Below, piece by piece: positions 7,077 to 62,296 of a stretch of DNA of 64,000 nt (its first letter is position 1; each line of letters opens with the position of its first letter). Position numbers and translations under genes: made by a program. The stretch comes from Macrostomum lignano. Its lineage: Eukaryota. Under the pieces are notes generated by a model that did no database searches, was not told the origin of the DNA, and saw only the letters and a program-made list of their open reading frames with translations. The stretch is taken from positions 44,229-108,228 of the forward strand of contig NIVC01002818.1 of NCBI GenBank assembly GCA_002269645.1, given 5' to 3'.

Positions 7077-7146
7077 AAAAAATAATATTTCCAAATGGGA
7101 TCTCGGATATCTGGTGTCGCCACATCACATTTCTGTTCGACTCAGA

Positions 7147-22082: not shown

Positions 22083-22146
22083 TCATAACGCAGCCGACGC
22101 AGGGAAGCCCAAAGCAACAAGTTTTAATAAAAAATCATACATTGCA

Positions 22147-23452
22147 ATGATACTAGTTGGTTTAATACCGCTACTGTTTTTGTGCTACCCAGCTGTAGCA
22201 TGCGAGCAATGCTCTGCCGTGTATGAGCTTCTGACCAACACCTGTCCGATGAGTGCTCTGTCTGGCCTGGAGCCCGCGACCGCTGCCGTCGAGTCCGAGT
22301 GCGTGCTGCACTGCACTCTGAATAGCTGGTGCCGACTGTCTGTGTACCTGACAGACAGTGGTGCCTGCTACAGCCTGCCTGACGTGGCTTCAGTGACTGG
22401 CAGCTGCGGCCTGGTGCGAAGGAAACTGGCCATCGTTTCCGGTAAGCTTTTAGCATAGCTGTTGGTGCGGTCAGATTTGTCTCGCACAGGGTAAACAAGT
22501 GTGTGAACTATCATCATTTCACAGACGCATCAACGTCTGCAACTGTCTCAACAATCGGATCAACTGGTTCCACGACCAGCCCGACCAGCGCAACTGGGAC
22601 TCAATCTCCGGTCACTGTAGCATCGACCACAATGGTGCAGAGTGTCTCCACAGCTGCCATTTCGTCCGGAGTGTCGAACCTGAGCTTCGCCTCAAGCGTA
22701 CTGCTTTGGTACAATTTTCGAAAGGGCTTCATGAACCTGGCGAACCCGGGCCATTTCGATGTCTCACCTTTCGGTGTTGCAGATCAGGATGCACTCAAAG
22801 GAGTTCGCCTCAACGGGTCCTCCAGTTCCTATCTTGAGGTTCATTCGACCAACTTCTTCAAAAACTTTAAATCCGGGAAAAGCTACAGCTTCTTTTTTCA
22901 AGGGACTTTCGCTGACAACGCGTCGTGAGTTTTCAGAAAATTCAATATTAATGTATTAGAGATTTTTAACGCGTTATTAATCATTATTAACCACACAGCG
23001 GTTGCATACATTGCAGGCTTAGATGCATCAGTTCGTTTAGCAGCTGCTCGCACAACACCACCGTCAGCCACTTCAGCACTGACATCGCAGCCAGGATTTA
23101 CTCCAAGACCTACTTTTCAGACGGCTCCGAAGAATTCGCGTCGGTGGGCGCAGAAGCAGCTCTTCCGAACAACGGTTCTGAGCAAGTCCACTCTATTGGA
23201 CTGGCCTTTATTGGTGAGGACAATGAGTACCTCGACGAGTGGTACTTGAATGGATTTTTTTACGATACCGAATCACCAGATACTGACGGTGATAGCCCCA
23301 CCGCCAACTCGACCTTCGACTGCTTGCGCATCGGCAACTGCTTCAGCGCCGGCCCTCGGCCCTACAACGGCTGGCTGCAGTGCTGGGGATTCGTCAACAG
23401 CACTCTCAGTCTTCCCGAGTTTAACAGCCTTCGCCAATTGTGCAACTCTTAG
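22147..23452 (+). CDS. Secreted PAN/apple + Ser/Thr-rich linker + LamG/ConA-like protein, paralogue A1 (382 aa)
   Basis: Exons 22147-22441, 22525-22924 and 22999-23452, with GT-AG introns in phases 1 and 2 giving one open frame. Hydrophobic signal peptide; PAN-like EC...C..NSWC..SVY....GAC; T/S-rich stalk; beta-sandwich-like C-terminal domain (LNGSSSSYLEV, H.IGL.F, WY.NG, LRIGN...YNGWLQCWGF). Confidence 0.85.
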
Positions 23453-23709
23453 ACTGCGCGGTCTGAATCCACGGCGCAGTCAAAATGGCCAGGACTTTGT
23501 CAGAATTGCCAGAACCAACTAACCAATAATAACTAGGTAGAGGCTAGGTAAAAAAGGAACGAAAGTGCGGAGTAATGTGTGCTGTGTCAAGTTTTGATGC
23601 GGAACGAATGAAAAAAATTCTAAGCTTATTAGAAGCAGCCCAAAAGTTTTTCCTTTACATGTAACTTTGCCGCTCTCAGTATCGATTTCTAAGACTGAAA
23701 TAAGCAAAG

Positions 23710-24510
23710 TGAAAAAGGCCTGCAGCAGTTACTACCACACACAAAGGCTTTAATTGTTGTGCTTGTTTGATCTCTCCAATAAAGTAACTTTTCTCTAGTT
23801 GGGAACAATTTTCATCATCAAGGATGCTGAGCTTCCTATCACGGGGCTATAATTTCTGTCCATCGGTTCTGAAAAAGCTTTCCCAAGTCAAAGTATCAGA
23901 AGTCCGTTAAACACACCAGAGACTCCAATCGGCTGTTGAATCCGACATGCACAAAACCGGAGCAGCCGAGAGAGCTGTTTTGCATAGTAGATCAAAAAGC
24001 AATCTTGAACAAAGCTTCTTTTCAAAGCAAGCTGTTTTAGTAAATTTTTTTAGTTCTTGTCACACTGACTGATTTATTTACCAGAGACAAGGTCCGCTGA
24101 TGAGTTACCCAATGCAGACTTTTTATAGTTAACACCAGTCGTTTACGCTTCGCATTCTGTCTTTTGTTATTTTTTAGTTTTTATGCGCAGCGCCATCGAA
24201 AAGTCACGCATGCCTGCTTTTTTATTCTTCGATTGGGCCAAAATTGCGTTGACAAAAGCGGAGCCCTGCATTGAGCTGACAATGGTCGATAGCCTTTTCA
24301 GCACGCACAAACGTTGTTGATTTTTTAACCAAGCTGGTACGTGTTCCTCTTCTTCACAAACCTTTCATTCTGTTTGCTCTGCTTTAAATCTGCTTACTTT
24401 TTTCTGAATATTCGCTACGATGCGTCCAAACAGATGTTTAATCCACTTATTTTTGTTTCTCTCAATGCGTAAGAAAATCTATTCATTTTTATCGATCTAA
24501 ATGTTGCTCG
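23710..24510 (-). pseudogene. Ancient, highly decayed Ty3/Gypsy pol (RT-connection-RNase H) downstream of A1; homologues at ~34660-35450, ~51990-52790 and ~62650-63420
   Basis: Motifs assembled by eye across the copies, in Gypsy order: SGLAL..KC..VTFL.R.V, KDRMRSF, QLK-TALIAAPVL.M.D, TDFSDTLTG (for TDASD.G.G) and EKSY...KPLCVVV.A. Many stops and frameshifts. Confidence 0.5.
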
Positions 24511-27119
24511 TAGTCAACGTCTATACTCGTATATTGCCTTTTTTTAGACTATCACACACCTAATATAGATATAAATTATGCTTTTCTTGCCTTCAAATCG
24601 TCAGCACTAACCCTTTAAATCTTAACCTACTGTAGTAAACCTAGTTCTGTAGCCCAGTCAATTCTGTCGGCTTCTTGAAGTCAAATTTGTAAAAACTAGA
24701 TAGATACTATATTCTAAAAACTTCTGTCTTCAATTTTTTTATACGTGACTTCAAAGTGTAGAACAAGGTTGCTGCAACTCGGACTGCTACTCAATAGAGC
24801 CTACGAGCGAAATGTTACTTCACGAGTTTCCTATACGGATGGGGAACTACGCTTGTACTGACCAATCGGCTAAAGAATCTATCCCGTTGGGTTTTTATTT
24901 CAATTCGAGGCAAGATTACGGGCGCGCTCTCTGCACTACTTCCCAACGAGCATGAGATGGAGAGTGCGAGAGTGCGAGAGGGAGAGTGCGAGATGGATAT
25001 ATCACAGACTATCAGAACAGCAATGCCAAGGACAACTTAAGGTGAATATGAATAGAGCTATAAGAAAGGCGCAACATATTAAAAGATGAACTCTGGGTCT
25101 GCATCCTGTACAATAACAATTTTTGCGCTGAAAAATGAAAACTATCTATCGCTGTAGTGTATTTTTCGGCGAAAAGTTGCCTCTAAAAATTGCCATAGAT
25201 TTTGAGTGTTGCTTCCCTCTACTTAAGTTGTCCTTGAGCAATCCTCGCTGGAAAGTACGCAGTTTCAACCACAGATACTATGGTTTCAACACAGTTGCAC
25301 ACCGATTCCATGCCATTGCCTTCCTAATTCACTAAAGCAACCACCGATTTTAAGATCATATAGGATAAGTTGAGGCACCGGAAAAATTGACTCGTGCAGT
25401 ACGGCAGATTTATTGAGTTATTATTTTATAGACGCTAATTTTGTCTAGAGTTCGAAGGGGGCATAGCCTAATGGTCTAGCGCAGCGCTCTGATGTGCCAG
25501 ATTCCAAGTGCAGTTACATTAATTTGGGCTAAATTCGGGCTTGGGTCTACTCGTGCAAATGGCGCTCTTGAGGGGACAATCAGCAATGCACGAGGAAGTG
25601 TACATGCCTAACGATAAATATAGTTTGGGGCCGCTGTACACTCCTGTGCGTATGACTGCGTACCTATCCGCGCGCTTCTGTGCCTGCTTAAGTCGAGTTG
25701 ACCGAATGGGCAGTAATGCCTCTCGCCGGTTGTGTGACAATGTCGCCAAAAATGCGCCAGAGTGTAACACAGTCCCCTTCATCTAATAAAGGGGTCTGAA
25801 TTTCTATGTGCTTCATACACAAGCGATGTTATATAGCGCTGCTGTGCGTACTTTCATTCGTCTGCTGCAATCCACTTGAATTGAAAATTTCGAATTCTCT
25901 CAACTGTGGTTGTTTTGGTAAATCAATCTTTAATCTACAATCTTATTACTGTCAGTAAGATGGCCGGTAATTGATTTTGCGGTTTTTCTATTCTGTGAGA
26001 CTTTTAAAAAGAAAATGAGAATACGGAGGTTTTTGACAGAGCATAAAAATACAAATATCGTCACACTCGCATTGTGAATGCATATGTAAGAACAAGCCAA
26101 GACGAAAATAGGCTTAAGGCGTAGACCGACTCTTGGCTGCCCAGGGCGCCAAGCACTCACTTATATATTATGATTGTACATAATAGCAAAAGTACGTACG
26201 GGCTAGTAAACTTGCGTACATGCAATCAACTAATCAAACCATCTTACACATATATTTATTATACCCAATACTGGCCACTCAATAACTAAGACTTTATTAG
26301 CCAACAGGACAAAGGCGGAAGGCGCGGGGATGGCGAGGACGACGAAGGGCAGGCGAAGCGAGCCCGCTAGCAATTACGAGTATATTTCGATAGTATTGAA
26401 GTTTAAAAGAAACAAAAATTGCTGAGTAAAACAGGAGAACCAAAATCATAGGATAAAAGAAAAAGCAAGGAAAAGCAGAAGAAAAATTGCGAGGGCAAAC
26501 GCGCTGATCAGACCATCGCGCACGCACATGCACAGGCCAACCGCCCCAGCACCCGGCGCACCCCCACCCCCCACACGCTGCCACAAAGAACAGCCCGCGC
26601 AAGCACGCACAAAGGCACAAAGTCAGCTAAACGCGATTACAGCGCCAGTAACCCAGCACTGATATCGCCAACTTATTCACTCATTCATTAGTCATTATTA
26701 GAATGCTTTATCGAATGGGAAATTATTGACTTTAGATGCATTGTAAGAATCTCGACTGACTGAATTGCAATTCCAATTGAGATTGCGCCACAACTTTTTT
26801 TCTCCACTGTGTAGGCCTCAATACTGGCTGCAGTGTGCAAGGGACAGGAAAATGCTTAATGGCTGCGTGTGTACATTCTGACTGCATAGACAATTGCTAT
26901 TTATACGCCCGTAGATTTCACTCAACTGTGCATTGGCTCTGGCAGCACACAACCTGTGCACACTGAGCAGCCTATCCACTGCTATGTGTTTGAATGAAGT
27001 GCTGAAGCATATATGGCTGATTTTCTCGTCCTCCAATCAACAGGCGGAATAGCCGCAGCTGTAGTCACTAGGACTAGGTTTAGGCGAGGCGTAAGGTCCC
27101 AGTTGCAAAGGTGACAAGC

Positions 27120-27796
27120 CCCAGGGCACGCAGGGTTTCCGGGGAACGAGCTGGCAGACACCCTCGCCAAGAGGGGCGGCTCTGGCTCTTTTTTCGGCCC
27201 TGCCCCCCTGGTCCCTATGCCCTTGACAGTCATCAATCGTCAGATCGACGACTGGGCTGACTCCCTCCACAGGGACAGATGGGCGGGCACCCAAAACTGC
27301 CGGCAATCTCGTGCCGCGGTTCCTTGCCCGTCTCACAGGCTCAGAAACATCCTTCTGAACCAGAATCGGAAGGATATTCGAGCCCTTATCATGACCCTTA
27401 CCGGCCATGGCAACCTCGCCAGGCACTGCTTCCTCCGAGGCGACCTCGAGAGCGAAATTTGCCCCTTTTGCGAGTGCGACAATGAAGATGCTCAGCACTT
27501 TGTCTGTCACTGCCCTTTCTTTAACAGAGACCGGCTACGCTACCTCGGGCCGAACCCGTCCATTGACGAGGTTTGCCAGCCCGACAGCATCCCACGGCTC
27601 ATCCAGTTCCTTCGGGCGACTAGACGAGCCAGTTTCTTCCCAACGGAAGATCACGCTGCAGGACGGACCGGCGGACCACCCTGACCGGCCCCACGCCTCT
27701 GCCTGTCTGCGGGCCTTCAGGGGCTAGCGGAATGGGCGACCCTCGCCTCCCCGCTGTGTCTACGGACCACCCTGCAGCTAAGTCAAGTAAGTAAGT
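27120..27796 (+). mobile_element. 5'-truncated RNase H-bearing non-LTR retrotransposon (I/R1/Loa group)
   Basis: GHAGFPGNELADTLAK (RNase H end), LTGHGNLARH and CPFC..DNEDAQHFVCHC (C-terminal CCHC). TAAG-repeat tail and a perfect 14-bp TSD CAAAGGTGACAAGC at 27106-27119 and 27797-27810. Confidence 0.92.
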
Positions 27797-27929
27797 CAAA
27801 GGTGACAAGCTGCAAACTGCTGAGGTATTTCCTCCAGACTTATGAGCGTATAGCTGAAAACTGCTGAGGGGTAACAGCGGATTGCTTGGAGGATAATGGC
27901 AGAATTCTGAGGAGGATAACTTCATGGGT

Positions 27930-28445
27930 TCAACCATAAAACTCATTTGGAATTGCCAAGATATCAAAAGGTTAGTCGCTAAGTTTTTAAGCTCATTGGG
28001 GAATGGCTGAAATTATTGGGCTGAGACGCTGTGACTCGGCTGCGGGTTAAGGGTTATGGTTAGGGTTCAGTTATAGAAAAATCGTGTTAGCCATAAAGGA
28101 TTCATGAGGGAATTGCTAAGATGCTGAGGCTTAAGGCTCATGGGGGAATTGCCAAGATTCTACGACTCACTTATGATGTTTGGGATAGGGCTTAGGGTCA
28201 GTTTTGGGGTTAGGATTCAATATAATAACGCTCTCTCAACCATAAATTACTTAGGGGGAATTGCTGAGACGTCAATTTTCATGGGGGCTTTCAAAGATGT
28301 GAAGGCTCGCGGGGGAAATTTCTGAGATTTCAATGGTGTTTGTGGGAAATTGCTAAGATTTCAAGGATCATGAGGGGAATTTCTGAGATGCCAAGGCTCA
28401 TGTGGAAATTGTTGAGATATCTAGGCTCATAAGGGATTGCTGTGT
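27930..28445 (+). repeat. Degenerate ~28-bp repeat family (GGGAATTGCTRAGAT.TCAAGGCTCAT), recurring at 30165-30310 and in the duplicated block
   Basis: Multiple imperfect units, interspersed with degenerate GGTTAGGG-like stretches. Confidence 0.7.
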
Positions 28446-28754
28446 TGTTGGGGGTGGGGGTTGGGTTGTTAGGCGATTGTTAGATAGTCAGTAGTACGTC
28501 CCAAGTAAGTTATTTAATTCAGTTAATGAGATATTCATACGTATGTGATACTGATTTCTGCTAATAGCAAATACGAGCGTATTTATAAGAGATTTGATTT
28601 TTTTACTTTAGGCTAAGTTACTTTATTTAGGCTAATAAAGTCCGTAATGGATTAGTGTATTGAGCTGTTCGGGCCAGAATATAACTAGGCTAATGACGAT
28701 GCGCACAAAGAGTTTTTGCTTGACGGGATAGGCGTTATTTGCTGATTGAGAAAG

Positions 28755-29449
28755 TGTGACGTTGTCAGTTTAAAGTGGTCCCGCAAAAGGGCCGTTGGAC
28801 TACAATTTCTCATTTAACATTCTCCAATCTTGTATGCGCATGTTTACTTGTAGTAGCGCCCAACGAATCTGTATCAATTGCTAATCATTGCGTACATTGT
28901 AATCTTTGCGTGCGTCTGTAGGGTCTTCGCGCGATCGATACTTTCTGTTTTTGCTTTTCCCCCGCCAGCCAATGGAAACTCCGCGCATATATTATGCTAA
29001 CCCTCCTGGGCTCCTTTATTAACCCCGCCTGGCGGCCGCCACGGCCCGCTCCGTCTGGGCCAGACTTGTTTACGCCTTCTCTCTCTCTCCGCTTCACTCT
29101 ACCACGGGCTAGCCGCTTTCGCTAGGCCCTACTACGCTACTTTCCTGTCTGCCAGTTTGCCACTAAAGGCTGCCACCACTGTCTACTCATCGCCATCGCT
29201 CTACCATTTGCGTCACCTTCATCAATCTGCTCATCATCCTACTTTATCTATTAAATTCAAACCCATTGTTGCAGCCGCCAGCGCCCCGCGTGCCATAGCC
29301 TCTGTACTAACTTATATTGACAATTACAATAAACAAGCTGCGGCCCTTATTTATCTTGCCGCTGAATTGCCAAGTGCTACCGCTACAAATCTACTCCGCC
29401 ATTGTTGAGTTCACCATCCTTTTAGGAACCTACAACTAAGAACGTCACA
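28755..29449 (+). mobile_element. Solo LTR (695 bp)
   Basis: TGTGACGTT...AACGTCACA inverted termini, 4-bp TSD AAAG, internal TATA-like CATATATTAT and AATAAA. Second copy at 57030-57725. Confidence 0.85.
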
Positions 29450-30512
29450 AAAGGATTTAGGGCTGATGAAGGATTGCAGGAATAAAAAGTAATTTTATGT
29501 CTAATTAAAATCAACGTTTTGGCTGATTAATTATTTAAATTACTCTCGGGCACAAATGAAAGCCCCTTAGTGTCATTTTTGCGCCCCGAAAAGGGGGTTT
29601 AATGACTAGTCGTGGTTTGGCCAATTTTCTTCAAATTTTAATCGTTAGATGGGAAATTTTTCGGAATGAATACGCATTGAGTTGAGATTTCTCAGTGTTA
29701 AGGGGATTAAATATTCGAAAAACATGCTATTTCGCAAAGGTCAAGCAGACTTTTCGACTTGAAATGCTTTGGACAAGCGTACGAATGCAAGAGAAAAAAA
29801 CTGACTGACTGAATTCTGACTTTGATAAAGACTGCATCACACCAGGCTTTTTATTTATCGTCTGTGCGCTGGCTGTGAATTGCATCACAGTGTTGAAAAT
29901 ACAGTGTGAAAGCATGACACCGGACTTCATTGAAATTGCGTAACCATATTGTAAAATTTAATGGACACTGATACTCTGACTGAGTAATTGATTATATCCT
30001 AACTGCTTCGAGTGACTTGCTCTAACCGACTTGGTGTGGGTGTTGAAATATAAGTCCTACAATTCATTTTATTAGACTGATGAGAGCTAGTCCGGATGTG
30101 AGCAGACTGAACTGCTAATGCAGCAACCTGAGTTTGAATCTTAGTTGTGTAAAAATTCTTTATAGAAAGATTGAGATGTCAAGGCTTAGGGGGGGGGAGA
30201 TTGCTGAGATATCAAGGCTGGGAGGAATTGCTGAAATGTCAAGAATGACGGGGAGAATTGCTGAGATGGCAAGGTTTACGGGGGGGGGGTTGCTGAGATG
30301 CCAAGGCTTAGAGGTCAGAAGCTACATGTAGTTTATTCAAAAAATTATTTCATTCTTTGTTGACTACTCAAATCTTTGTCCGTGACAATTTTACTCCGAA
30401 TAACGTGATTCAAAAAACTGAAGAAGGAATGCTTTTAAGAAAATATGCCTTCATCTTAAAAGATTCACATACGTAATTTTCGTCCCTTGCTTATTGGCCG
30501 CGCCGAAGGGGG

Positions 30513-31966
30513 GTATGACGATTAGAGCAGACTCAGTCCCGGGAAAATTGTGTAGCGGTAGCACTCAGACTTAAACGCAGTCAATGTACTCGTAATTGTT
30601 AGGTTATGGCCGATGGCGGCAATTTATTACGGTCAGATTGACCCGCTCGCTATAGGTTTTTGTCGGCAATATAAGAGTGGGACTGGGCCTGGATTGACCC
30701 GCTCGCTATAGGTTTCTGTCGGCAATATAAGAGTGGGACTGGGCCTGGATTGACCCGCTCGCTATAGGTTTCTGTCGGCAATATAACAGTGGGACTGGGC
30801 CTGGATTGACCCGCTCGCTATAGGTTTCTGTCGGCAATATAAGAGTGGGACTGGGCCTGGATTGACCCGCTCGCTATAGGTTTCTGTCGGCAATATAAGA
30901 GTGGGACTGGGCCTGGATTGACCCGCTCGCTATAGGTTTCTGTCGGCAATATAAGAGTGGGACTGGGCCTGGATTGACCCGCTCGCTATAGGTTTTTGTC
31001 GGCAATATAAGAGTGGGACTGGGCCTGGATTGACCCGCTCGCTATAGGTTTCTGTCGGCAATATAAGAGTGGGACTGGGCCTGGATTGACCCGCTCGCTA
31101 TAGGTTTCTGTCGGCAATATAAGAGTGGGACTGGGCCTGGATTGACCCGCTCGCTATAGGTTTCTGTCGGCAATATAAGAGTGGGACTGGGCCTGGATTG
31201 ACCCGCTCGCTATAGGTTTCTGTCGGCAATATAAGAGTGGGACTGGGCCTGGATTGACCCGCTCGCTATAGGTTTCTGTCGGCAATATAAGAGTGGGACT
31301 GGGCCTGGATTGACCCGCTCGCTATAGGTTTTTGTCGGCAATATAAGAGTGGGACTGGGCCTGGATTGACCCGCTCGCTATAGGTTTTTGTCGGCAATAT
31401 AAGAGTGGGACTGGGCCTGGTTTGGTGCTGAATCCGAGCTATGGTACTCTGGGCACTGCGGCAGGCAACAAAAATGGCGATGGATAGCTAAAGGGCTACG
31501 TCGATGAAGTGGCGACGGTGAAGGCGTGGCGTGATTCCCACTCGGGACAGTGGCGTGGCTCAAGTTTGGCAGAGTGGACTTGCCCGAGCAAACTTAGCAG
31601 TGGTAGAGAGAGAGAGAGCGCGCGGGCCGGAAAACAAGAAGGAAAAGAAACTAACCCCGGGTGCCCCATCCAGACAGGACTGATAACGAGCGGGCTGGGG
31701 TGGGTGCACGACAAAAGCTTAATTTCAGGCTAGCATAATATGTGCACGGCTTTCCTATTGGCCGGCGCGAAAAGCAACTTAAAAACAGAAATTATCGATC
31801 GCATTGTACATAGGTTTTACGAATGTCACGCAATGTTGTTAAAATTCCTTGGGCATTACTATAAGCAGACGTTAGAGTACGAGACCATCAAATTAACAAT
31901 ATATAGAATGGCACTGCTTTCGCTAAAACGGCCCTTGTCGGGGCCACCTCAACTGACAACGTCACA
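30513..31966 (-). mobile_element. Solo LTR of the same family, in inverted orientation, carrying an internal VNTR
   Basis: The minus-strand start TGTGACGTTGTCAGTTGAGGTGGCCCCGACAAGGGCCGTT matches the start of 28755. Shared blocks: GCGATCGATA.TTTCTGTTTT, CATATTATGCTA, CTTATATTG, AATAAA, GTGCTACCGCTACA. 4-bp TSD GGGG. Confidence 0.82.
30637..31420 (+). repeat. 56-bp VNTR, 14 units
   Basis: ATTGACCCGCTCGCTATAGGTTTYTGTCGGCAATATAAGAGTGGGACTGGGCCTGG every 56 nt from 30637 to 31365. Confidence 0.98.
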
Positions 31967-32918
31967 GGGGGCACTATAGATTGCTAGCATGACTAGCATG
32001 ACTATTTTCTACTGAATGATGGAAAAACTGGTGCCAGTGAATTTAAAATTAATAAAAATGATGCGAAGTTACAGAAAATCAGCTGCCTGATGACAATTTT
32101 AATGGACAATGAGTCATGACTAGATAGTAATCATAGTTTGCCGTCCTTCTATTTGAGTAGTCCTTGATCAGACATATAGAAATCTGAAAGTTTGCTAGAA
32201 ATAAAAGTATTCCTGCTCGCAGCTTGCGAACCCTGTTATCGACCCGTCGACAGACATCAATGGCAAATTGGGCCCTTTTTAAACTGCGCCGTTTTATTTT
32301 GACTTGTATTGCACATTTCCATTCTTTTAGTGTCCAATACTATCCACTAACGTCGTTGCAATTTAAAAGCACACATTTGCCATCGATGTCGCAAGACGAC
32401 TTCGGATTATTTTTCGGAATGTAGTCGATCGACACTGCATGTAAGCACTGTATAATGTACATGTACAACTTAATATTCACACTAACGCGTTTTAAATGAC
32501 ATCTACACAAATTTCATTTCATTTTCAAATGCATGTAATAAATTAAACGTAAAAAAGTCTTCTAAAAAATATGCCTAATGTATTATCCAACTTGGCATCC
32601 CGTATTTCTGTCGAGTTCGGGCCGACCCCTGTTTTGCCACTGGGCTGCCTATTCCTATTGGCACTCAGCGTTTCATCAAGAGAATGGAGAGGGTGTAGTG
32701 CGATCCTTCAGCACAGGTACAGATGCATGTAGATGTCCATAGCCTTAAAAATAGGCTATATCTACAGTGTTCTGTCCAATGAGACACTTGCCAGCTTAAA
32801 CAGTCAGTGTGTCATTGATGATTGCAACAACAAAACAACAATCTATATTCGCATAAAGCGACCTACCTAAGGGTAGAGCCTCCTAGCAAATTCTAAAGCT
32901 AAAACAGCATATATTACA

Positions 32919-36179: not shown

Positions 36180-36265
36180 ATGCCTGATGTGTCTGATGTG
36201 TCTGATGTGCCTGATGTACCTGAAGTGCCTGAAGTGCCTGAAGTGCCTGATGTGCGCTCTGATGT
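36180..36265 (+). repeat. 9-bp microsatellite (CTGA(T/A)GTG(C/T))
   Basis: About 9 units, expanded from a CTGATGTGCC motif present once in the paralogous spacer (~25488). Confidence 0.85.
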
Positions 36266-50010: not shown

Positions 50011-50424
50011 TGTGCATCGTTAATGAACATTGTCATGGATGTACATTTAAATGTATGTAAAATATTCTAGTGTTGGCAGTACTTGTAGATGCTTGCAGCT
50101 CCGAAAAGAACTAGTACTGAACCTTTAAAAAGCAGATATTTAACCAAACTGAAAACTTCACAAAATGGCCACTAGACTTTGACATTTGACTTTCCTGTTG
50201 TAATCCACGTCCTATACTAACCTTTCCGACAACCTTTTGCAATCAAAACAGTTTTCTGTCCAGTGAGACAAATTCCAGCTTAAACAGCTGGCGTGTCATT
50301 GGTGATTGCAGCGCTTCAAAAAACAATATAAATTCGCATAGGGCGGCCTACGCGGGGTAGAGCCACCCAGCAAAGTCTAAAACAACTGATTCTGATAATA
50401 CAACCTAAAACAGCATATATTACA

Positions 50425-51725
50425 ATGATAGTTGGTGTAATGTCGTTATTGCTTTTGTGCTACCCAGCTATAGCATGCGAGCAATGCTCTGCCGTGCATG
50501 AGCTTCTGACCAACACCTGTCCGATGAGTGCTCTGTCTGGCCTGGAGCCCGCGACCGCTGCCGTTGAGTTCGAGTGCGTGCAGCACTGCACTCTGAATAG
50601 CTGGTGCCGACTGTCTGTGTACCTGACAGACAGTGGTGCCTGCTACGGCCTGCCCAACGTGACTTTAGTGACTGGCAGCTGCGGCCTGGTGCGAATGAAA
50701 CTGGCCATCGTTTCCGGTAAGCTTTTAGCATGGCAGTTGATGCGGTCAGATTTGTCTCGCACAGGGTAAACAAGTGTGAACTATCATCATTTCACAGACG
50801 CATCAACGTCTGCAACTGCCTCTTCAATCGGATCAACTGGTTCCACGACCAGCCCGACCAGCGCAACTGGGACTCAATCTCCGGTCACTGTAGCATCGAC
50901 CACAATGGTGCAGAGTGTCTCCACAGCTGCCATTTCGTCCGGAGTGTCGAACCTGAGCTTCGCCTCAAGCGTACTGCTTTGGTACAACTTTCGAAAGGGT
51001 TTCATGAACCTGGCGAACCCGGGCCGTTTCGATGTCTCACCTTTTGGTGTTGCGGACCAGAATGCACTCAAAGGAGTTCGCCTCAACGGCTCCTCCAGTT
51101 CCTATCTTGAGGTTCATTCGACCAACTTCTTCAAAAACTTTAAATCCGGGAAAAGCTTCAGCTTCTTTTTTCAAGGGACTTTTGCCAGCAACGCGTCGTG
51201 AGTTTTCAGAAAATTCAATATTAATGTATTAGAGATTTTTAACGCGTTATTAATCATTATTAACCACACAGCGGTTGCATACATTGCAGGCTTCGATGCA
51301 TCAGTTCGTTTAGCAGCTGCTCGTACAACACCACCGTCAGCCACTTCAGCACTGACATCGCTGCCAGGATTTACTCTAAGACCTACTTTTCCGACGGCTC
51401 CGAAGAATTCGCGTCGGTGGGCGCAGAAGCAGCTCTGCCGAACAACGGTTCTGAGCAAGTCCACTCTATTGGACTGGCCTTTATTGGTGAGGACAATGAG
51501 TACCTCGACGAGTGGTACTTGAATGGATTTTTTTACGATACCGAATCACCAGATACTGACGGTGATAGCCCCGCCGCCAACTCGACCTTCGTCTGCTTGC
51601 GCATCGGCAACTGCTTCAGCGCTGGCCCTCGGCCCTACAACGGCTGGCTGCAGTGCTGGGGGTTTGTCAACAGCACTCTCAGTCTTCCCGAGTTTAACAG
51701 CCTTCGCCAATTGTGCAACTCTTAG
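50425..51725 (+). CDS. Secreted PAN + S/T linker + LamG/ConA-like protein, paralogue A2 (381 aa)
   Basis: Exons 50425-50716, 50798-51197 and 51272-51725; conserved splice sites; open frame. Confidence 0.85.
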
Positions 51726-54700
51726 ACTGCGCGATCTGAATCCACGGCGCAGCCAAAATGGCCAGGACTTTGTAAGAATTGCCAGAACCAACTAACAAAT
51801 AATAACTAGGTAGAGGCTAGGTAAAAAATGAACGAAAGTGCGGAGTAATGTGTGCTGTGTCAAGTTTTGATGCGGTATGAATGAAAAAAACTCTAAGCTT
51901 ATTAGAAGCAGTCCAAAAATGTATCCTTTACATGTAACTTTGCCGCTCTCAGTATAATCGATTTCTAAGACTGAAATAAGCAAAGTGAAAAAAGGGCCTG
52001 CAGCAGTTACTACCACACACAAAGGCTTTAATTGTTGTGCTTGTTTGATCTCTCCAATAGAGTAACTTTTCTCTAGTTGGGAACAATTTTCATCATCAAG
52101 GATGCTGAGCTTCCTATCACGGGGCTATAATTTCTGTCGATCGGTTTTGAAAAAGCTTTCCCGAGTCAAAGTATCAGAAGTCCGTTAAACACAACAGAGA
52201 CTCCAATCGGCTGTTGAATCCGACATGCACAAAACCGGAGCAGCCGAGAGAGCTGTTTTGCATACTAGATCAAAAAGCAATCTTGAACAAAGCTTCTTTT
52301 CAAAGCAAGCTGTTTTAGTAAAATTTTTTTAGTTCTGGTCACACTGACTGATTTATTTACCAGAGACAAGGTCCGCTGATGAGTTACCCAATGCAGACTT
52401 TTTATAGTTAACACCAGTCGTTTACGCTTCGCATTCTGTCGTTTTGTTATTTTTTAGTTTTTATGCGCAGCGCCATCGAAAAGTCACGCATGCCTGCTTT
52501 TTTATTCTTCGATTGGGCCAAAATTGCGTTGACAAAAGCGGAGCCCTGCATTGAGCTGACAATGGTCGATAGCCTTTTCAGCACGCACAAACGTTGTTGA
52601 TTTTTTAACCAAGCTGTTACGTGTTCCTCTTCTTCACAAACCTTTCATTCTGTTTGCTCTGCTTTAAATCTGCTTACTTTTTTCTGAATATTCGCTACGA
52701 TGCGTCCAAACAGATGTTTAATCCACTTATTTTTGTTTCTCTCAATGCGTAAGAAAATCTATTCATTTTTATCGATCTAAATGTTGCTCGTAGTCAACGT
52801 CTATACTCGTATATTGCCTTTTTTTAGACTATCACACACCTAATATAGATATAAATTATGCTTTTCTTGCCTTCAAATCGTCAGCACTAACCCTTTAAAT
52901 CTTAACCTACTGTAGTAAACCTAGTTCTGTAGCCCAGTCAATTCTGTCGGCTTCTTGAAGTCAAATTTGTAAAAACTAGATAGATACTATATTCTAAAAA
53001 CTTCTGTCTTCAATTTTTTTATACGTGACTTCAAAGTGTAGAACAAGGTTGCTGCAACTCGGACTGCTACTCAATAGAGCCTACGAGCGAAATGTTACTT
53101 CACGAGTTTCCTATACGGATGGGGAACTACGCTTGTACTGACCAATCGGCTAAAGAATCTATCCCGTTGGGTTTTTATTTCAATTCGAGGCAAGATTACG
53201 GGCGCGCTCTCTGCACTACTTCCCAACGAGCATGAGATGGAGAGTGCGAGAGTGCGAGAGGGAGAGTGCGAGATGGATATATCACAGACTATCAGAACAG
53301 CAATGCCAAGGACAACTTAAGGTGAATATGAATAGAGCTATAAGAAAGGCGCAACATATTAAAAGATGAACTCTGGGTCTGCATCCTGTACAATAACAAT
53401 TTTTGCGCTGAAAAATGAAAACTATCTATCGCTGTAGTGTATTTTTCGGCGAAAAGTTGCCTCTAAAAATTGCCATAGATTTTGAGTGTTGCTTCCCTCT
53501 ACTTAAGTTGTCCTTGAGCAATCCTCGCTGGAAAGTACGCAGTTTCAACCACAGATACTATGGTTTCAACACAGTTGCACACCGATTCCATGCCATTGCC
53601 TTCCTAATTCACTAAAGCAACCACCGATTTTAAGATCATATAGGATAAGTTGAGGCACCGGAAAAATTGACTCGTGCAGTACGGCAGATTTATTGAGTTA
53701 TTATTTTATAGACGCTAATTTTGTCTAGAGTTCGAAGGGGGCATAGCCTAATGGTCTAGCGCAGCGCTCTGATGTGCCAGATTCCAAGTGCAGTTACATT
53801 AATTTGGGCTAAATTCGGGCTTGGGTCTACTCGTGCAAATGGCGCTCTTGAGGGGACAATCAGCAATGCACGAGGAAGTGTACATGCCTAACGATAAATA
53901 TAGTTTGGGGCCGCTGTACACTCCTGTGCGTATGACTGCGTACCTATCCGCGCGCTTCTGTGCCTGCTTAAGTCGAGTTGACCGAATGGGCAGTAATGCC
54001 TCTCGCCGGTTGTGTGACAATGTCGCCAAAAATGCGCCAGAGTGTAACACAGTCCCCTTCATCTAATAAAGGGGTCTGAATTTCTATGTGCTTCATACAC
54101 AAGCGATGTTATATAGCGCTGCTGTGCGTACTTTCATTCGTCTGCTGCAATCCACTTGAATTGAAAATTTCGAATTCTCTCAACTGTGGTTGTTTTGGTA
54201 AATCAATCTTTAATCTACAATCTTATTACTGTCAGTAAGATGGCCGGTAATTGATTTTGCGGTTTTTCTATTCTGTGAGACTTTTAAAAAGAAAATGAGA
54301 ATACGGAGGTTTTTGACAGAGCATAAAAATACAAATATCGTCACACTCGCATTGTGAATGCATATGTAAGAACAAGCCAAGACGAAAATAGGCTTAAGGC
54401 GTAGACCGACTCTTGGCTGCCCAGGGCGCCAAGCACTCACTTATATATTATGATTGTACATAATAGCAAAAGTACGTACGGGCTAGTAAACTTGCGTACA
54501 TGCAATCAACTAATCAAACCATCTTACACATATATTTATTATACCCAATACTGGCCACTCAATAACTAAGACTTTATTAGCCAACAGGACAAAGGCGGAA
54601 GGCGCGGGGATGGCGAGGACGACGAAGGGCAGGCGAAGCGAGCCCGCTAGCAATTACGAGTATATTTCGATAGTATTGAAGTTTAAAAGAAACAAAAATT

Positions 54701-55397
54701 GCTGAGTAAAACAGGAGAACCAAAATCATAGGATAAAAGAAAAAGCAAGGAAAAGCAGAAGAAAAATTGCGAGGGCAAACGCGCTGATCAGACCATCGCG
54801 CACGCACATAAAAGGCCAACCGCCCCAGCACCCGGCGCACCCCCACCCCCACACGCTGGCACAAAGAACAGCCCGCGCAAGCACGCACAAAGGCACAAAG
54901 TCAGCTAAACGCGATTACAGCGCCAGTAACCCAGCACTGATATCGCCAACTTATTCACTCATTCATTAGTCATTATTAGAATGCTATATCGAATGGGAAA
55001 TTATTGACTTTAGATGCATTGTAAGAATCTCGACTGACTGAATTGCAATTCCAATTGAGATTGCGCCACAACTTTTTTTCTCCACTGTGTAGGCCTCAAT
55101 ACTGGCTGCAGTGTGCAAGGGACAGGAAAATGCTTAATGGCTGCGTGTGTACATTCTGACTGCATAGACAATTGCTATTTATACGCCCGTAGATTTCACT
55201 CAACTGTGCATTGGCTCTGGCAGCACACAACCTGTGCACACTGAGCAGCCTATCCACTGCTATGTGTTTGAATGAAGTGCTGAAGCATATATGGCTGATT
55301 TTCTCGTCCTCCAATCAACAGGCGGAATAGCCGCAGCTGTAGTCACTAGGACTAGGTTTAGGCGAGGCGTAAGGTCCCAGTTGCAAAGGTGACAAGC

Positions 55398-56074
55398 CCC
55401 AGGGCACGCAGGGTTTCCGGGGAACGAGCTGGCAGACACCCTCGCCAAGAGGGGCGGCTCTGGCTCTTTTTTCGGCCCTGCCCCCCTGGTCCCTATGCCC
55501 TTGACAGTCATCAATCGTCAGATCGACGACTGGGCTGACTCCCTCCACAGGGACAGATGGGCGGGCACCCAAAACTGCCGGCAATCTCGTGCCGCGGTTC
55601 CTTGCCCGTCTCACAGGCTCAGAAACATCCTTCTGAACCAGAATCGGAAGGATATTCGAGCCCTTATCATGACCCTTACCGGCCATGGCAACCTCGCCAG
55701 GCACTGCTTCCTCCGAGGCGACCTCGAGAGCGAAATTTGCCCCTTTTGCGAGTGCGACAATGAAGATGCTCAGCACTTTGTCTGTCACTGCCCTTTCTTT
55801 AACAGAGACCGGCTACGCTACCTCGGGCCGAACCCGTCCATTGACGAGGTTTGCCAGCCCGACAGCATCCCACGGCTCATCCAGTTCCTTCGGGCGACTA
55901 GACGAGCCAGTTTCTTCCCAACGGAAGATCACGCTGCAGGACGGACCGGCGGACCACCCTGACCGGCCCCACGCCTCTGCCTGTCTGCGGGCCTTCAGGG
56001 GCTAGCGGAATGGGCGACCCTCGCCTCCCCGCTGTGTCTACGGACCACCCTGCAGCTAAGTCAAGTAAGTAAGT
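55398..56074 (+). mobile_element. Duplicate of the 5'-truncated LINE
   Basis: Same sequence and the same 14-bp TSD (55384-55397, 56075-56088). Confidence 0.92.
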
Positions 56075-57029
56075 CAAAGGTGACAAGCTGCAAACTGCTG
56101 AGGTATTTCCTCCAGACTTATGAGCGTATAGCTGAAAACTGCTGAGGGGTAACAGCGGATTGCTTGGAGGATAATGGCAGAATTCTGAGGAGGATAACTT
56201 CATGGGTTCAACCATAAAACTCATTTGGAATTGCCAAGATATCAAAAGGTTAGTCGCTAAGTTTTTAAGCTCATTGGGGAATGGCTGAAATTATTGGGCT
56301 GAGACGCTGTGACTCGGCTGCGGGTTAAGGGTTATGGTTAGGGTTCAGTTATAGAAAAATCGTGTTAGCCATAAAGGATTCATGAGGGAATTGCTAAGAT
56401 GCTGAGGCTTAAGGCTCATGGGGGAGTTGCCAAGATTCTACGACTCACTTATGATGTTTGGGATAGGGCTTAGGGTCAGTTTTGGGGTTAGGATTCAATA
56501 TAATAACGCTCTCTCAACCATAAATTACTTAGGGGGAATTGCTGAGACGTCAATTTTCATGGGGCTTTCAAAGATGTGAAGGCTCGCGGGGGAAATTTCT
56601 GAGATTTCAATGGTGTTTGTGGGAAATTGCTAAGATTTCAAGGATCATGAGGGGAATTTCTGAGATGCCAAGGCTCATGTGGAAATTGTTGAGATATCTA
56701 GGCTCATAAGGGATTGCTGTGTTGTTGGGGGGGGGTTGGGTTGTTAGGCGATTGTTAGATAGTCAGTAGTACGTCCCAAGTAAGTTATTTAATTCAGTTA
56801 ATGAGATATTCATACGTATGTGATACTGATTTCTGCTAATAGCAAATACGAGCGTATTTATAAGAGATTTGATTTTTTTACTTTAGGCTAAGTTACTTTA
56901 TTTAGGCTAATAAAGTCCGTAATGGATTAGTGTATTGAGCTGTTCGGGCCAGAATATAACTAGGCTAATGACGATGCGCACAAAGAGTTTTTGCTTGACG
57001 GGATAGGCGTTATTTGCTGATTGAGAAAG

Positions 57030-57725
57030 TGTGACGTTGTCAGTTTAAAGTGGTCCCGCAAAAGGGCCGTTGGACTACAATTTCTCATTTAACATTCTCC
57101 AATCTTGTATGCGCATGTTTACTTGTAGTAGCGCCCAACGAATCTGTATCAATTGCTAATCATTGCGTACATTGTAATCTTTGCGTGCGTCTGTAGGGTC
57201 TTCGCGCGATCGATACTTTCTGTTTTTGCTTTTCCCCCGCCAGCCAATGGAAACTCCGCGCATATATTATGCTAACCCTCCTGGGCTCCTTTATTAACCC
57301 CGCCTGGCGGCCGCCACGGCCCGCTCCGTCTGGGCCAGACTTGTTTACGCCTTCTCTCTCTCTCCGCTTCACTCTACCACGGGCTAGCCGCTTTCGCTAG
57401 GCCCTACTACGCTACTTTCCTGTCTGCCAGTTTGCCACTAAAGGCTGCCACCACTGTCTACTCATCGCCATCGCTCTACCATTTGCGTCACCTTCATCAA
57501 TCTGCTCATCATCCTACTTTATCTATTAAATTCAAACCCATTGTTGCAGCCGCCAGCGCCCCCGCGTGCCATAGCCTCTGTACTAACTTATATTGACAAT
57601 TACAATAAACAAGCTGCGGCCCTTATTTATCTTGCCGCTGAATTGCCAAGTGCTACCGCTACAAATCTACTCCGCCATTGTTGAGTTCACCATCCTTTTA
57701 GGAACCTACAACTAAGAACGTCACA
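57030..57725 (+). mobile_element. Duplicate solo LTR
   Basis: TGTGACG...CGTCACA with AAAG TSD. Confidence 0.85.
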
Positions 57726-58755
57726 AAAGGATTTAGGGCTGATGAAGGATTGCAGGAATAAAAAGTAATTTTATGTCTAATTAAAATCAACGTTTTGGCT
57801 GATTAATTATTTAAATTACTCTCGGGCACAAATGAAAGCCCCTTAGTGTCATTTTTGCGCCCCGAAAAGGGGGTTTAATGACTAGTCGTGGTTTGGCCAA
57901 TTTTCTTCAAATTTTAATCGTTAGATGGGAAATTTTTCGGAATGAATACGCATTGAGTTGAGATTTCTCAGTGTTAAGGGATTAAATATTCGAAAAACAT
58001 GCTATTTCGCAAAGGTCAAGCAGAATGCAAGAGAAAAAAACTGACTGACTGAATTCTGACTTTGACAAAGACTGCATCACACCAGGCTTTTTATTTATCG
58101 TCTGTGCGCTGGCTGTGAATTGCATCACAGTGTTGAAAATACAGTGTGAAAGCATGACACCGGACTTCATTGAAATTGCGTAACCATATTGTAAAATTTA
58201 ATGGACACTGATACTCTGACTGAGTAATTGATTATATCCTAACTGCTTCGAGTGACTTGCTCTAACCGACTTGGTGTGGGTGTTGAAATATAAGTCCTAC
58301 AATTCATTTTATTAGACTGATGAGAGCTAGTCCGGATGTGAGCAGACTGAACTGCTAATGCAGCAACCTGAGTTTGAATCTTAGTTGTGTAAAAATTCTT
58401 TATAGAAAGATTGAGATGCCAAGGCTTAGGGGGGGGGGGAGATTGCTGAGATATCAAGGCTGGGAGGAATTGCTGAAATGTCAAGAATGACGGGGAGAAT
58501 TGCTGAGATGGCAAGGTTTACGGGGGGGGGGTTGCTGAGATGCCAAGGCTTAGAGGTCAGAAGCTACATGTAGTTTATTCAAAAAATTATTTCATTCTTT
58601 GTTGACTCCTCAAATCTTTGTCCGTGACAATTTTACTCCGAATAACGTGATTCAAAAAACTGAAGAAGGAATGCTTTTAAGAAAATATGCCTTCATCCTA
58701 AAAGATTTACATACGTAATTTTCGTCCCTTGCTTATTGGCCGCGCCGAAGGGGGG

Positions 58756-59985
58756 TGTGACGATTAGAGCAGACTCAGTCCCGGGAAAATTGTGTAGCGG
58801 TAGCACTCAGACTTAAACGCAGTCAATGTACTCGTAATTGCTAGGTTATGGCCGATGTCGGCAATTTATAACGGTCGGATTGACCCGCTCGCTATAGGTT
58901 TTTGTCGGCAATATAAGAGTGGGACTGGGCCTGGATTGACCCGCTCGCTATAGGTTTTTGTCGGCAATATAAGAGTGGGACTGGGCCTGGATTGACCCGC
59001 TCGCTATAGGTTTTTGTCGGCAATATAAGAGTGGGACTGGGCCTGGATTGACCCGCTCGCTATAGGTTTCTGTCGGCAATATAAGAGTGGGACTGGGCCT
59101 GGATTGACCCGCTCGCTATAGGTTTTTTTCGGCAATATAAGAGTGGAACTGGGCCTGGATTGACCCGCTCGCTATAGGTTTTTTTCGGCAATATAAGAGT
59201 GGGACTGGGCCTGGATTGACCCGCTCGCTATAGGTTTTTGTCGGCAATATAAGAGTGGGACTGGGCCTGGATTGACCCGCTCGCTATAGGTTTTTGTCGG
59301 CAATATAAGAGTGGGACTGGGCCTGGATTGACCCGCTCGCTATAGGTTTTTGTCGGCAATATAAGAGTGGGACTGGGCCCGGATTGACCCGCTCGCTATA
59401 GGTTTTTTTCGGCAATATAAGAGTGGGACTGGGCCTGGTTTGGTGCTGAATCCGTGCTATGGTACTCTGGGCACTGCGGCAGGCAACAAAAATGGCGATG
59501 GATAGCTAAAGGGCTACGTCGATGAAGTGGCGACAGTGAAGGCGTGGCGTGATTCCCACTCGGGACAGTGGCGTGGCTCAAGTTTGGCAGAGTGGACTTG
59601 CCCGAGCAAACTTAGCAGTGGTAGAGAGAGAGAGAGCGCGCGGGCCGGAAAACAAGAAGGAAAAGAAACTAACCCCGGGTGCCCCAGCCAGACAGGACTG
59701 ATAACGAGCGGGCTGGGGGTGGGTGCACGACAAAAGCTTAATTTCAGGCTAGCATAATATGTGCACGGCTTTCCTATTGGCCGGCGCGAAAAGCAACTTA
59801 AAAACAGAAATTAGCGATCGCATTGTACATAGGTTTTACGAATGTCACGCAATGTTGTTAAAATTCCTTGGGCATTACTATAAGCAGACGTTAGAGTACG
59901 AGACCATCAAATTAACAATATATAGAATGGCACTGCTTTCGCTAAAACGGCCCTTGTCGGGGCCACCTCAACTGACAACGTCACA
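58756..59985 (-). mobile_element. Duplicate inverted solo LTR with a 10-unit 56-bp VNTR (58879-59438)
   Basis: Perfect TGTGACG...CGTCACA termini and GGGG TSD; 1230 bp = 1454 minus 4 x 56. Confidence 0.85.
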
Positions 59986-60936
59986 GGGGGCACTATAGAT
60001 TGCTAGCATGACTAGCATGACTATTTTCTACTGAATGATGGAAAAACTGGTGCCAGTGAATTTAAAATTAATAAAAATGATGCGAAGTTACAGAAAATCA
60101 GCTGCCTGATGACAATTTTAATGGACAATGAGTCATGACTAGATAGTAATCATAGTTTGCCGTCCTTCTATTTGAGTAGTCCTTGATCAGACATATAGAA
60201 ATCTGAAAGTTTGCTAGAAATAAAAGTATTGCTGCTCGCAGCTTGCGAACCCTGTTATCGACCCGTCGACAGACATCAATGGCAAATTGGGCCCTTTTTA
60301 AACTGCGCCGTTTTATTTTGACTTGTATTGCACATTTCCATTCTTTTAGTGTCCAATACTATCCACTAACGTCGTTTCAATTTAAAAGCACACATTTGCC
60401 ATCGATGTCGCAAGACGACTTCGGAATATTTTTCGGAATGTAGTCGATCGACACTGCATGTAAGCACTGTATAGTGTACATGTACAACTTAATATTCACA
60501 CTAACGCGTTTTAAATGACATCTACACAAACTTCATTTCATTTTCAAATGCATGTAATAAATTAAACGTAAAAAAGTCTTCTAAAAATATGCCTAATGTA
60601 TTATCCAACTTGGCATCCCGTGTTTCTGTCAAGTTCGGGCCGACCCCTGTTTTGCCACTGGGCTGCCTATTCCTATTGGAACTCAGCGTTTCATCAAGAG
60701 AATGGAGAGGGTGTAGTGCGATCCTTCAGCACAGGTACAGATGCATGTAGATGTCCATAGCCTTAAAAATAGGCTATATCTACAGTGTTCTGTCCAATGA
60801 GACACTTGCCAGCTTAAACAGTCAGTGTGTCATTGATGATTGCAACAACAAAACAACAATCTATATTCGCATAAAGCGACCTACCTAAGGGTAGAGCCTC
60901 CTAGCAAATTCTAAAGCTAAAACAGCATATATTACA

Positions 60937-62296
60937 ATGATAGTTAGTGTAATATCGCTACTGTTCTTGTGCTACCCAGCTGTAGCATGCGAGCAATGCT
61001 CTGCCGTGTATGAGCTTCTGACCAACACCTGTCCGATGAGTGCTCTGTCTGGCCTGAAGCCCGCGACCGCTGCCGTCGAGTTTGAGTGCATGCGGAACTG
61101 CACTCTGAATAGCTGGTGCCGACTGTCTGTGTACCTGACAGACAGTGGTGCCTGCTACAGCCTGCCCAACGTGACTTTAGTGACTGGCAGCTGCGGCCTG
61201 GTGCGAAGGAAACTGGCCATCGTTACCGGTAAGCTTTTAGCATAGCTGTTGGTGCGGTCAGATTTGTCTCGCTTGCACAGGTCACAGATGTGAACTATCA
61301 TCATTTCACAGGCACATTAACGTCTGCAACTGCCTCAACAATCGGATCAACTGGTTCCACGACCAGCCCGACCAGCGCAACTGGGACTCAATCTCCAGTC
61401 ACTGTAGCATCGACCACAATGATACAGAGTGTCACCACGGCTGCCATTTCGTCCGGATTGTCGAACCTGAGCTTCGCGTCAAGCGTACTGCTTTGGTACA
61501 ATTTTCGAAAGGGCTTCATGAACCTGGCGAACCGTGGCCATTTTGATGCCTCCCCTGTCGGTGTTGCCGATCAGGATGCACTCAAAGGAGTTCACCTTAA
61601 CGGCTCGTCTGGCTCTTATCTCGAGGTTCATTCCACCAACTTTTTCAAGAACTTTAAATCAGGGAAAAGCTTCAGCTTCTTTTTTCAAGGGACTTTCGCT
61701 GGCAACGCGTCGTGAGTTTTCAGCAGATTCAATTTTAAAATATTCAGGATTTTTAACGCGTTATTAATCATTATTAACCACACAGCGGTTGCATACATTG
61801 CAGGCTTCGATGCATCAGTTCGTTCAGCAGCTGCTCGTACAACACCACCGTCAGCCACTTCAGCACTGACATCGCTGCCAGGATTTACTCCAAGACCTAC
61901 TTTTCCGACGGCTCCGATGAATTCACGTATGTGCTTGCAAAAGCAGCTCTTCCGAACAACGGTACTCAGCAAAGCTACTCTGCTGGGCTGGCCTTGATTG
62001 GTGGGGACAAGAAGTACCTGGATAAATGGTACATTAACGGAAGTTTCTACGACACGGAATCACCAAACAATGTCGGCGGCAGCCCGGCCGCCAACCAAAC
62101 CTTTGACTGTCTGCGCATCGGCAACTGCTTCAGCGCCGGCCCTCGGCCCTACAACGGCTGGCTGCAGTGCTGGGGGTTCGTCAACGGCACTCTCAGTCTT
62201 CCCGAGTTTGACAGCCTTCGTCACTTGTGCAACTCTTTAGACTTCGCGTTCTGGATCTACAGCGTAGTCAGAATGACCAAAACTTTGAAAGAATAG
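60937..62296 (+). CDS. Secreted PAN + S/T linker + LamG/ConA-like protein, paralogue B2 (400 aa, C-terminally extended)
   Basis: Exons 60937-61228, 61312-61711 and 61786-62296. An extra T (AACTCTTTAG versus AACTCTTAG) removes the shared stop and adds LDFAFWIYSVVRMTKTLKE. Confidence 0.82.

Follow-up and report, generated by a model that had tools for sequence, protein, structure and literature searches.

The free-living flatworm Macrostomum lignano, a genetic model (transgenesis, RNA interference) for regeneration, bioadhesion, and sexual conflict, encodes a set of predicted "Apple domain-containing proteins" that are without any experimental annotation, including A0A1I8GB94 (P0001), A0A1I8IEZ8 (P0020), A0A1I8IEP9, A0A1I8JLL0, A0A267DNP4/PAA50913, and others. 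These proteins display a leader, a six-Cys PAN module, and then a sandwich domain of ~225 aa, and they share the C-terminal motif G-W-L-x-C-W ... L-x-x-x-E-F-x-x-L-x-x-x-C. Four paralogues with the same layout and motif, g1–g4, are described here from the last 64 kb of the Mlig_3_7 contig NIVC01002818.1 (108,228 bp; positions 44229–108228), which constitute the window of 64,000 nucleotides that was analyzed. We consider it probable that g1–g4 are real genes kept by selection, belong to a family restricted to M. lignano, and encode soluble secreted glycoproteins with two binding-type modules, a PAN/apple domain and a ConA-like jelly-roll. Their nearest relative, P0001, is without the Ser/Thr-rich linker that joins the two modules in g1–g4, and a further relative, P0009, differs in being intronless and solitary (L004/L005).

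Caenorhabditis elegans LET-653 and its apical-matrix kin are secreted builders of extracellular matrix that possess PAN domain(s), a mucin-like Ser/Thr linker, and a C-terminal β-rich domain. In these proteins the C-terminal domain is of the ZP type rather than a ConA-like jelly-roll, and no relationship in sequence was detected. The apicomplexan microneme adhesins (Toxoplasma MIC4 and the Sarcocystis/Eimeria microneme antigen) are likewise secreted, lectin-type proteins with PAN/apple modules, which the family profile matches at E 9e-4 to 0.02; they differ from g1–g4 in carrying several tandem apple domains without a ConA-like domain, come from unrelated organisms, and resemble the family over only ~40 residues. 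The known adhesives of M. lignano itself share with g1–g4 the species, the (here predicted) secretion and glycosylation, and the use of lectin-type modules. They comprise, however, 5,407 and 14,794 aa, with C-type lectin, vWD, EGF, and TSP-1 domains and long repeats and without PAN or LamG. Kinship of g1–g4 to known flatworm glue proteins was rejected, there being no sequence relation.

Gene Models, Domain Architecture, and Taxonomic Range

The list of open reading frames (ORFs) in the window contains the same trio of fragments four times on the + strand, and joining the fragments yields complete reading frames. The resulting three-exon models, all on the + strand, are g1 (22147–22441 / 22525–22924 / 22999–23452; acidic type, 382 aa), g2 (32919–33210 / 33294–33693 / 33768–34221; basic type, 381 aa), g3 (50425–50716 / 50798–51197 / 51272–51725; acidic type, 381 aa), and g4 (60937–61228 / 61312–61711 / 61786–62296; basic type, 400 aa). 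Every intron is GT-AG, the lengths are 82–83 and 74 nt, and the phases are 1 and 2 in four of four genes, in agreement with a preliminary description of this DNA, which had proposed four paralogues spliced with identical phases into proteins of 381–400 aa. Exon 3 has three possible acceptors in frame, and the lengths listed above follow from the most upstream of them; for g1, the alternatives 23041 and 23017 (368 and 376 aa, in frame) were rejected in favor of 22999. The additional 42 nt contain just two differences among the paralogues (AGA/CGA and TTT/TTC), both synonymous in frame, and P0001, the sole close homologue, aligns across the segment that they encode; the most upstream acceptor is therefore taken as correct. 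A 1-nt insertion in g4 (CTCTTAG to CTCTTTAG, ~62237–62296) removed the ancestral stop and added a C-terminal tail of 19 aa, LDFAFWIYSVVRMTKTLKE, and g4 is thus not strictly intact. The earlier claim that all four copies are intact holds for the four ORFs and the eight intron boundaries, not for this lost stop codon.

Residues 1–21 form the sole hydrophobic segment of the g1–g4 proteins (KD19 > 1.6), in which small residues (A-x-A) precede the likely cleavage site between AVA and C; the leader is a prediction from this hydrophobicity scan. The same scan found no second hydrophobic stretch, and hence no membrane anchor, in any of the four proteins, the 19-aa tail of g4 included. Sixteen Cys, an even number, follow the leader, eight in the PAN part (residues 19–87) and eight in the sandwich. 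The linker (residues 98–150) comprises 26–28 Ser/Thr (49–53%) and two Pro among its 53 residues, with no tandem or internal repeat, and leads into a C-terminal domain of ~232 aa (residues ~151–382). Each protein contains 7–10 N-x-S/T sequons, where the preliminary description had spoken of several; most lie in the C-terminal domain, with one or two in the PAN region of g2–g4. From these features we infer that the products of g1–g4 are secreted and glycosylated, with presumable O-glycosylation of the linker. The overall architecture proposed earlier (leader, PAN/apple module, Ser/Thr-rich linker, ConA-like/LamG-type sandwich, and no anchor) was supported, except that the word "mucin" was too strong. 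Mucins and PTS domains are long, Pro/Thr/Ser-rich, and usually tandem-repeated, whereas this 53-aa, nonrepetitive segment with two Pro, missing from P0001, is better called a mucin-like linker.

Family-level evidence supports a disulfide-locked PAN/apple domain at residues ~20–95. Taken singly, g1–g4 score 14.2–14.5 bits against Pfam PAN_1 (PF00024; E 0.03–0.04; gathering score 21.4 bits), and single-sequence searches of the four proteins against the PDB gave nothing significant. Their relatives reach 16.6–24.4 bits, one of them above the cutoff, and ten of eleven family members match at E < 1. With E-values between 4e-4 and 0.02, the family profile retrieves PAN/apple domains of known structure (6ryw, Toxoplasma MIC4 2ll3/4a5v, HGF, and factor XI), the N-terminal PAN pair of a fungal oxidase among them. 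Within the six-Cys core, which has C-x3-C-x5-C at its center, C33, C52, C56, C62, and C87 are invariant across 12 family members, and C74 is present in at least 90%. An AlphaFold2 model places a helix at 49–58 and strands at 26–29, 64–68, 73–77, and 89–93 in this part, with a predicted local distance difference test (pLDDT) score of 72–85. The domain identity is accepted despite the weak single-sequence scores because the family context settles the assignment.

The C-terminal domain is supported by modeling as a two-sheet ConA-like (Laminin_G_3-type) jelly-roll. Its relation to the Laminin_G_3 / ConA-like lectin-glucanase superfamily (PF13385, clan Concanavalin) is one of shared fold, with a sequence match that is borderline and runs through P0009: the g1–g4 proteins give no match to the Pfam profile, and P0009, at 27.4 bits (E 4e-6), narrowly misses the cutoff of 27.6 bits and is tied to the g1–g4 proteins by hhalign at 99.8% probability. 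The PAN and LamG/ConA-like assignments of the preliminary description are supported, with g1–g4 themselves below the Pfam thresholds. In the AlphaFold2 model, for which 12 sequences of the family were used, pLDDT values are mostly 60–90 in both folded domains, with a few 10-residue sandwich blocks at 58–65 and values below 50 in the leader and linker; a model from five sequences (pLDDT 31) was not used. When the former was compared with the PDB by Foldseek, 183 matches passed E ≤ 0.001. Among these, the best 50 (probability 1.00, E 4e-8 to 6e-7) span 213–267 columns, essentially the whole domain, and are all ConA-like jelly-rolls, as the earlier fold proposal had it. The targets are the N-subdomain of clostridial neurotoxin Hc and, in trypanosomal (trans-)sialidases, the lectin-like domain; the family profile, too, gives a weak match (E 0.016–0.04) to the binding fragments of clostridial neurotoxins, in their lectin-like N-subdomain. 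This likeness extends to the fold of a scaffold or lectin module only, and nothing suggests toxin activity. Relative to Laminin_G_3, g1–g4 possess an extra Cys-rich loop (C234–C248) and a disulfide in the C-terminal helix; the conserved Cys360–Cys380 pair probably pins this helix to the last strand. Their C-terminal motif L-x-I-G ... G-x-hydrophobic ... L-s-x-x-E-hydrophobic-x-x-L is typical of Laminin_G_3.

An exhaustive hidden Markov model (HMM) search of 1.84 billion representative proteins retrieved about 10 clusters, all from M. lignano, with E-values ranging from 1.5e-143 (P0001) to 1e-3, and two further word-indexed searches added only more M. lignano proteins. The best public match to g1–g4 is 36–43% identical, within a family range of 20–43%. 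Close and remote subfamilies align with an hhalign probability of 99.8% (E 2e-28), indicating full-length homology; most members share the layout of leader, PAN, and sandwich, and g1–g4 are full-length homologues with the same domain order. Across >15 billion sequences, the PAN–ConA-like family has been found so far in M. lignano only, and g1–g4 appear to be unannotated in public protein sets. The preliminary description recognized no named orthologue with this architecture, and the HMM search, which matched only uncharacterized M. lignano predictions, bears this out. Its "possibly undescribed" is apt for g1–g4 and the linker-bearing subfamily, which are missing from UniProt/NCBI, and less so for the family at large, about 10 clusters of which are deposited there in uncharacterized form. 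A search of the literature on Macrostomum with apple, PAN, laminin G, or lectin, or on the family accessions, found nothing on this family. The gain consists of four genes that appear to lack annotation, together with the definition of a family of about ten clusters in which PAN and ConA-like modules are combined in a way not described before. As an advance it is modest: the PAN–linker–ConA-like arrangement, its restriction to M. lignano, and the absence of g1–g4 from public protein sets are new, and the modules and the evolutionary mode are already well known.

Some public models in the family are imperfect. In a remote subfamily (P0015/P0024 type), P0023, P0024, and P0025 are fragments or mis-spliced versions of one gene at positions 9779–11421 of locus L006 (NIVC01000900.1), and this PAN-plus-sandwich gene carries an intron in its interdomain linker. 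The UniProt names "Phage tail protein", "Fibrinogen C-terminal", "Dirigent protein", and "Lgl_C" within the family look like automatic mislabels or fused models. A look for annotated gene calls around the array yielded no record of the retrotransposon pol ORF, P0001, or P0020.

Selection and History of the Array

The proteins are 94–96% identical within types (g1/g3 and g2/g4) and 86% identical between types. Nei–Gojobori estimates of dN/dS are 0.26–0.39 overall and 0.13–0.27 in the C-terminal domain. Nonsynonymous differences are outweighed by synonymous ones (Nd/N 0.068 vs Sd/S 0.162–0.195), an excess that is significant both between types (Fisher p 9e-6 and 2e-8) and within them (p 6e-4 and 6e-5). 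Judged by dN/dS and the Fisher tests, g1–g4 look like working genes. Between-type dS is 0.19–0.26 across the whole coding sequence and up to 0.38 in the sandwich domain; at such divergence, pseudogenes would not be expected to retain four intact ORFs and eight intact intron boundaries. Conservation also reaches upstream, where the region preceding g1 (21960–22146, +) aligns with those upstream of g2, g3, and g4. Both a CCAAT box and its inverted form (ATTGG) are conserved in four of four genes, as is a TATA-like motif ~65–100 nt before the ATG, which reads TATAAAT in g1/g3 and TCTATAT in g2/g4.

Self-comparison of the window resolves the array into two duplication units, unit I (22128–34647, +) with g1, a spacer of ~8.5 kb rich in transposable elements (TEs), and g2, and unit II (50406–62649, +) with g3, a spacer, and g4. 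In both, the acidic gene precedes the basic one (g1–g2, g3–g4). What had been described as an expanding tandem array is hence tandem indeed, as a two-gene acidic–basic unit duplicated once rather than four independent duplicates. The spacers (24400–32900 and 52700–60900) consist of TE debris and a minisatellite and are ~100% identical between units, the genes at their edges being just 93–97% identical and g2/g4 falling to 84–91% identity at their 3′ end. Beyond g4, a third copy of the spacer begins (63557–64000, +; 100% identical to 24635–25078 and 52915–53358) and continues up to the contig end, which is also the window end, and the array may extend past the assembled contig. Since scattered mismatches, a 36-nt indel, and the copy number of the 56-nt minisatellite (14.1 copies at 30636–31424 vs 10.1 at 58877–59442; unit identity 98–99%) distinguish them, units I and II are not one sequence assembled twice. 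The identity of the spacers suggests gene conversion of recent date, unequal crossing-over, or an artifact of assembly; in a genome with hidden polyploidy, such an artifact could also account for some of the apparent expansion.

Synonymous divergence between types is 0.03–0.14 in codons 1–160 and 0.3–0.45 in codons 161–360, a step that indicates gene conversion of the 5′ halves. The history that we propose is that an acidic–basic gene pair was recently duplicated and that conversion homogenized the 5′ halves (leader, PAN, and linker), with the 3′ half of the sandwich retaining an old divergence that includes a charge-swapped segment at residues 273–332. A decayed fifth family member is present between the units as an inverted, exon-2-like relic (39459–39678, −) with two in-frame stops; by tblastn it matches g1 residues 152–200 (E 7e-6), and it is also matched by P0001 and P0012. 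A similar segment, "LLWYDFKK...", has been fused into P0006, a UniProt model. The features of the array fit birth-and-death with concerted evolution, and the birth-and-death character suggested earlier agrees with the recent duplication, the decayed relic, and the stop loss of g4. So read, the array offers a clean, small example of concerted evolution beside isoform divergence.

These data also bear on whether g1–g4 function at all at present, or whether only one or two loci exist, of which g1–g4 would be unexpressed copies, made recently or by the assembly, and g4 a copy already in decay. Their absence from both public annotations would accord with the latter, as would the 100% identical spacers and a contig that ends inside the third spacer copy, the lost stop of g4 and the relic nearby, and an upstream region with NDUFB9 that is present three times in the assembly. 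Such duplicates would scarcely be expected to keep four ORFs and eight splice-site pairs intact with dS up to 0.38 between types, a significant synonymous excess, and conserved promoter motifs, and the mismatches, 36-nt indel, and minisatellite copies (14 vs 10) that separate the units argue in the same direction. We hold present nonfunction to be improbable and continue with g1–g4 as genes kept by selection.

Acidic and Basic Isoforms and Candidate Functions

The two types differ most in residues 273–332, where pN is 0.19–0.23 compared with 0.01–0.08 elsewhere. Positive selection on this segment was considered and rejected, since pN/pS of 0.5–0.6 is raised but not above 1. The segment contains 14 acidic and no basic residues in g1/g3 and five to six acidic and four basic residues in g2/g4, and the mature proteins have net charges of −12 and −8 (g1/g3) and +7 and +5 (g2/g4). 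The charge-swapped segment and the old divergence in the 3′ half of the sandwich fit two functionally distinct isoforms, perhaps acting together. A bolder proposal, which we rate as a long shot, is that the acidic and basic isoforms are secreted together and pair electrostatically into a hetero-complex, which would be a two-component extracellular system peculiar to Macrostomum. If true, the pair could, for example, set or release adhesion as glycoproteins or manipulate the mating partner as seminal fluid components, and the PAN–linker–ConA-like architecture would represent a new kind of bivalent lectin. In a published model of the glue, release is predicted to depend on a negatively charged factor yet to be identified (PMC6410801).

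In the mechanism that we favor, the PAN/apple domain and the ConA-like jelly-roll, joined by the ~53-aa Ser/Thr-rich linker, would act as a bivalent extracellular binder, lectin-like or protein-binding, and would bridge glycans or proteins in surface mucus/glycocalyx, gland secretion, egg shell, reproductive fluid, or a comparable secreted matrix. The presumably O-glycosylated linker would serve as an extended, protease-resistant spacer that holds the binding heads apart. Several observations weigh against reading g1–g4 as selected genes for secreted, two-module binders. Neither g1–g4 nor anything >45% identical to them was found in a collection of 5.8 billion proteins that includes both public M. 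lignano annotations, and the annotators of those RNA-supported sets made no calls for the four genes. The proteins themselves fall under the Pfam thresholds (PAN_1 14.5 bits; no LamG match), and the structure model rests on only 12 sequences with a mean pLDDT of 68. The jelly-rolls that match the fold best are of the scaffold type and themselves bind ligands weakly or not at all, and no sugar- or Ca-binding residues were identified in the sandwich, for which no residue-level comparison was made. Finally, the 100% identity of the 8-kb spacers may stem from faulty assembly of a genome with hidden polyploidy.

A lectin or adhesion role for the predicted proteins is plausible, and roles in reproductive glands or immune recognition are equally compatible with the sequence data. 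The mucus/adhesive or innate-recognition function that the preliminary description had in view is purely an inference. Lineage-restricted secreted families often underlie species-specific biology such as bioadhesion and sexual conflict, and lineage-specific secreted proteins dominate the prostate-limited transcripts of M. lignano. The proteins might belong not to mucus or adhesion but to reproductive secretions (prostate/seminal fluid, cement/shell glands, antrum) diversified under sexual selection. This would suit a family limited to one lineage, tandem duplication with turnover, and an ω near 1 in the leader/PAN and linker together with a substitution hot spot that reverses charge. The overall dN/dS of 0.26–0.39 is, however, ordinary and nowhere significantly >1, and the literature search found no link between apple/PAN proteins and Macrostomum reproduction, which leaves a reproductive role unlikely, if the strongest of the alternatives. 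Innate immune pattern recognition by soluble lectins that bind microbial glycans and diversify by birth and death appears more doubtful still: the two binding-type modules, the predicted secreted form, and a multigene family with a variable surface segment are what such lectins would call for, but the array holds just two sequence types without hypervariability, and no recognizable sugar-binding motif was found (no residue-level comparison was made). The locus has no bearing on a long-standing question unless a function is found.

Remainder of the Window

The units of the array are separated by 15.7 kb of unrelated, insert-rich sequence containing an apparently intact BEL/Pao long terminal repeat (LTR) retrotransposon (40708–47114, −), identified by its LTRs, Pfam matches, and target-site duplication and not a member of the PAN–ConA-like family. 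Its LTRs are ~256 bp, 99.6% identical, and of the TG...CA type, flanked by the 5-bp target-site duplication ACTCC. Overlapping gag-like (46010–46798) and pol (41322–46241) ORFs are present, with Pfam matches to Peptidase_A17, RVT_1, the integrase zinc-binding domain, and DUF1759 (gag). The preliminary description had placed the genes amid transposons, and this element, a mariner-like fragment, and TE-like debris were all found. A transposon-borne origin of g1–g4 was rejected on two grounds: the conserved unit stops a few hundred bases to either side of the genes, and g2 is flanked by repeats unlike those around the other three.

Positions 1–8000 form a GC-rich gene island (50–61% GC) with an NDUFB9-like gene, a gene for protein phosphatase inhibitor 2 (7147–7626, −), and a partial zinc-finger gene (below ~3470). 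The NDUFB9-like gene (NADH dehydrogenase LYR-type subunit; single exon, 4181–4657, −) has an ORF that is identical, letter for letter, on three contigs of GCA_002269645.1 (NIVC01002818.1, NIVC01000639.1, and NIVC01000386.1). Copies of its region (L001, L002, and L003) are 100% (L001 vs window 1181–7657), 99.5%, and ~96% identical to the window, which is consistent with hidden polyploidy of the M. lignano genome. The island also contains an (ACAG)n array (327–653) and long minisatellites with units of 20, 21, and 29 nt (2408–2608, 3509–3752, 4782–5924, 6433–7075, and 7645–7893).

An AT-rich stretch (32–42% GC) extends between the island and the g1–g4 array. Within it lie a pair of inverted repeats of ~600 nt (11478–12073 / 13450–14047), the mariner/Tc1-like transposase fragment (14604–15104, −; sub-threshold match to Pfam Transposase_1), and, at 15711–16311, a very regular array of 49-nt units that are 99% identical.

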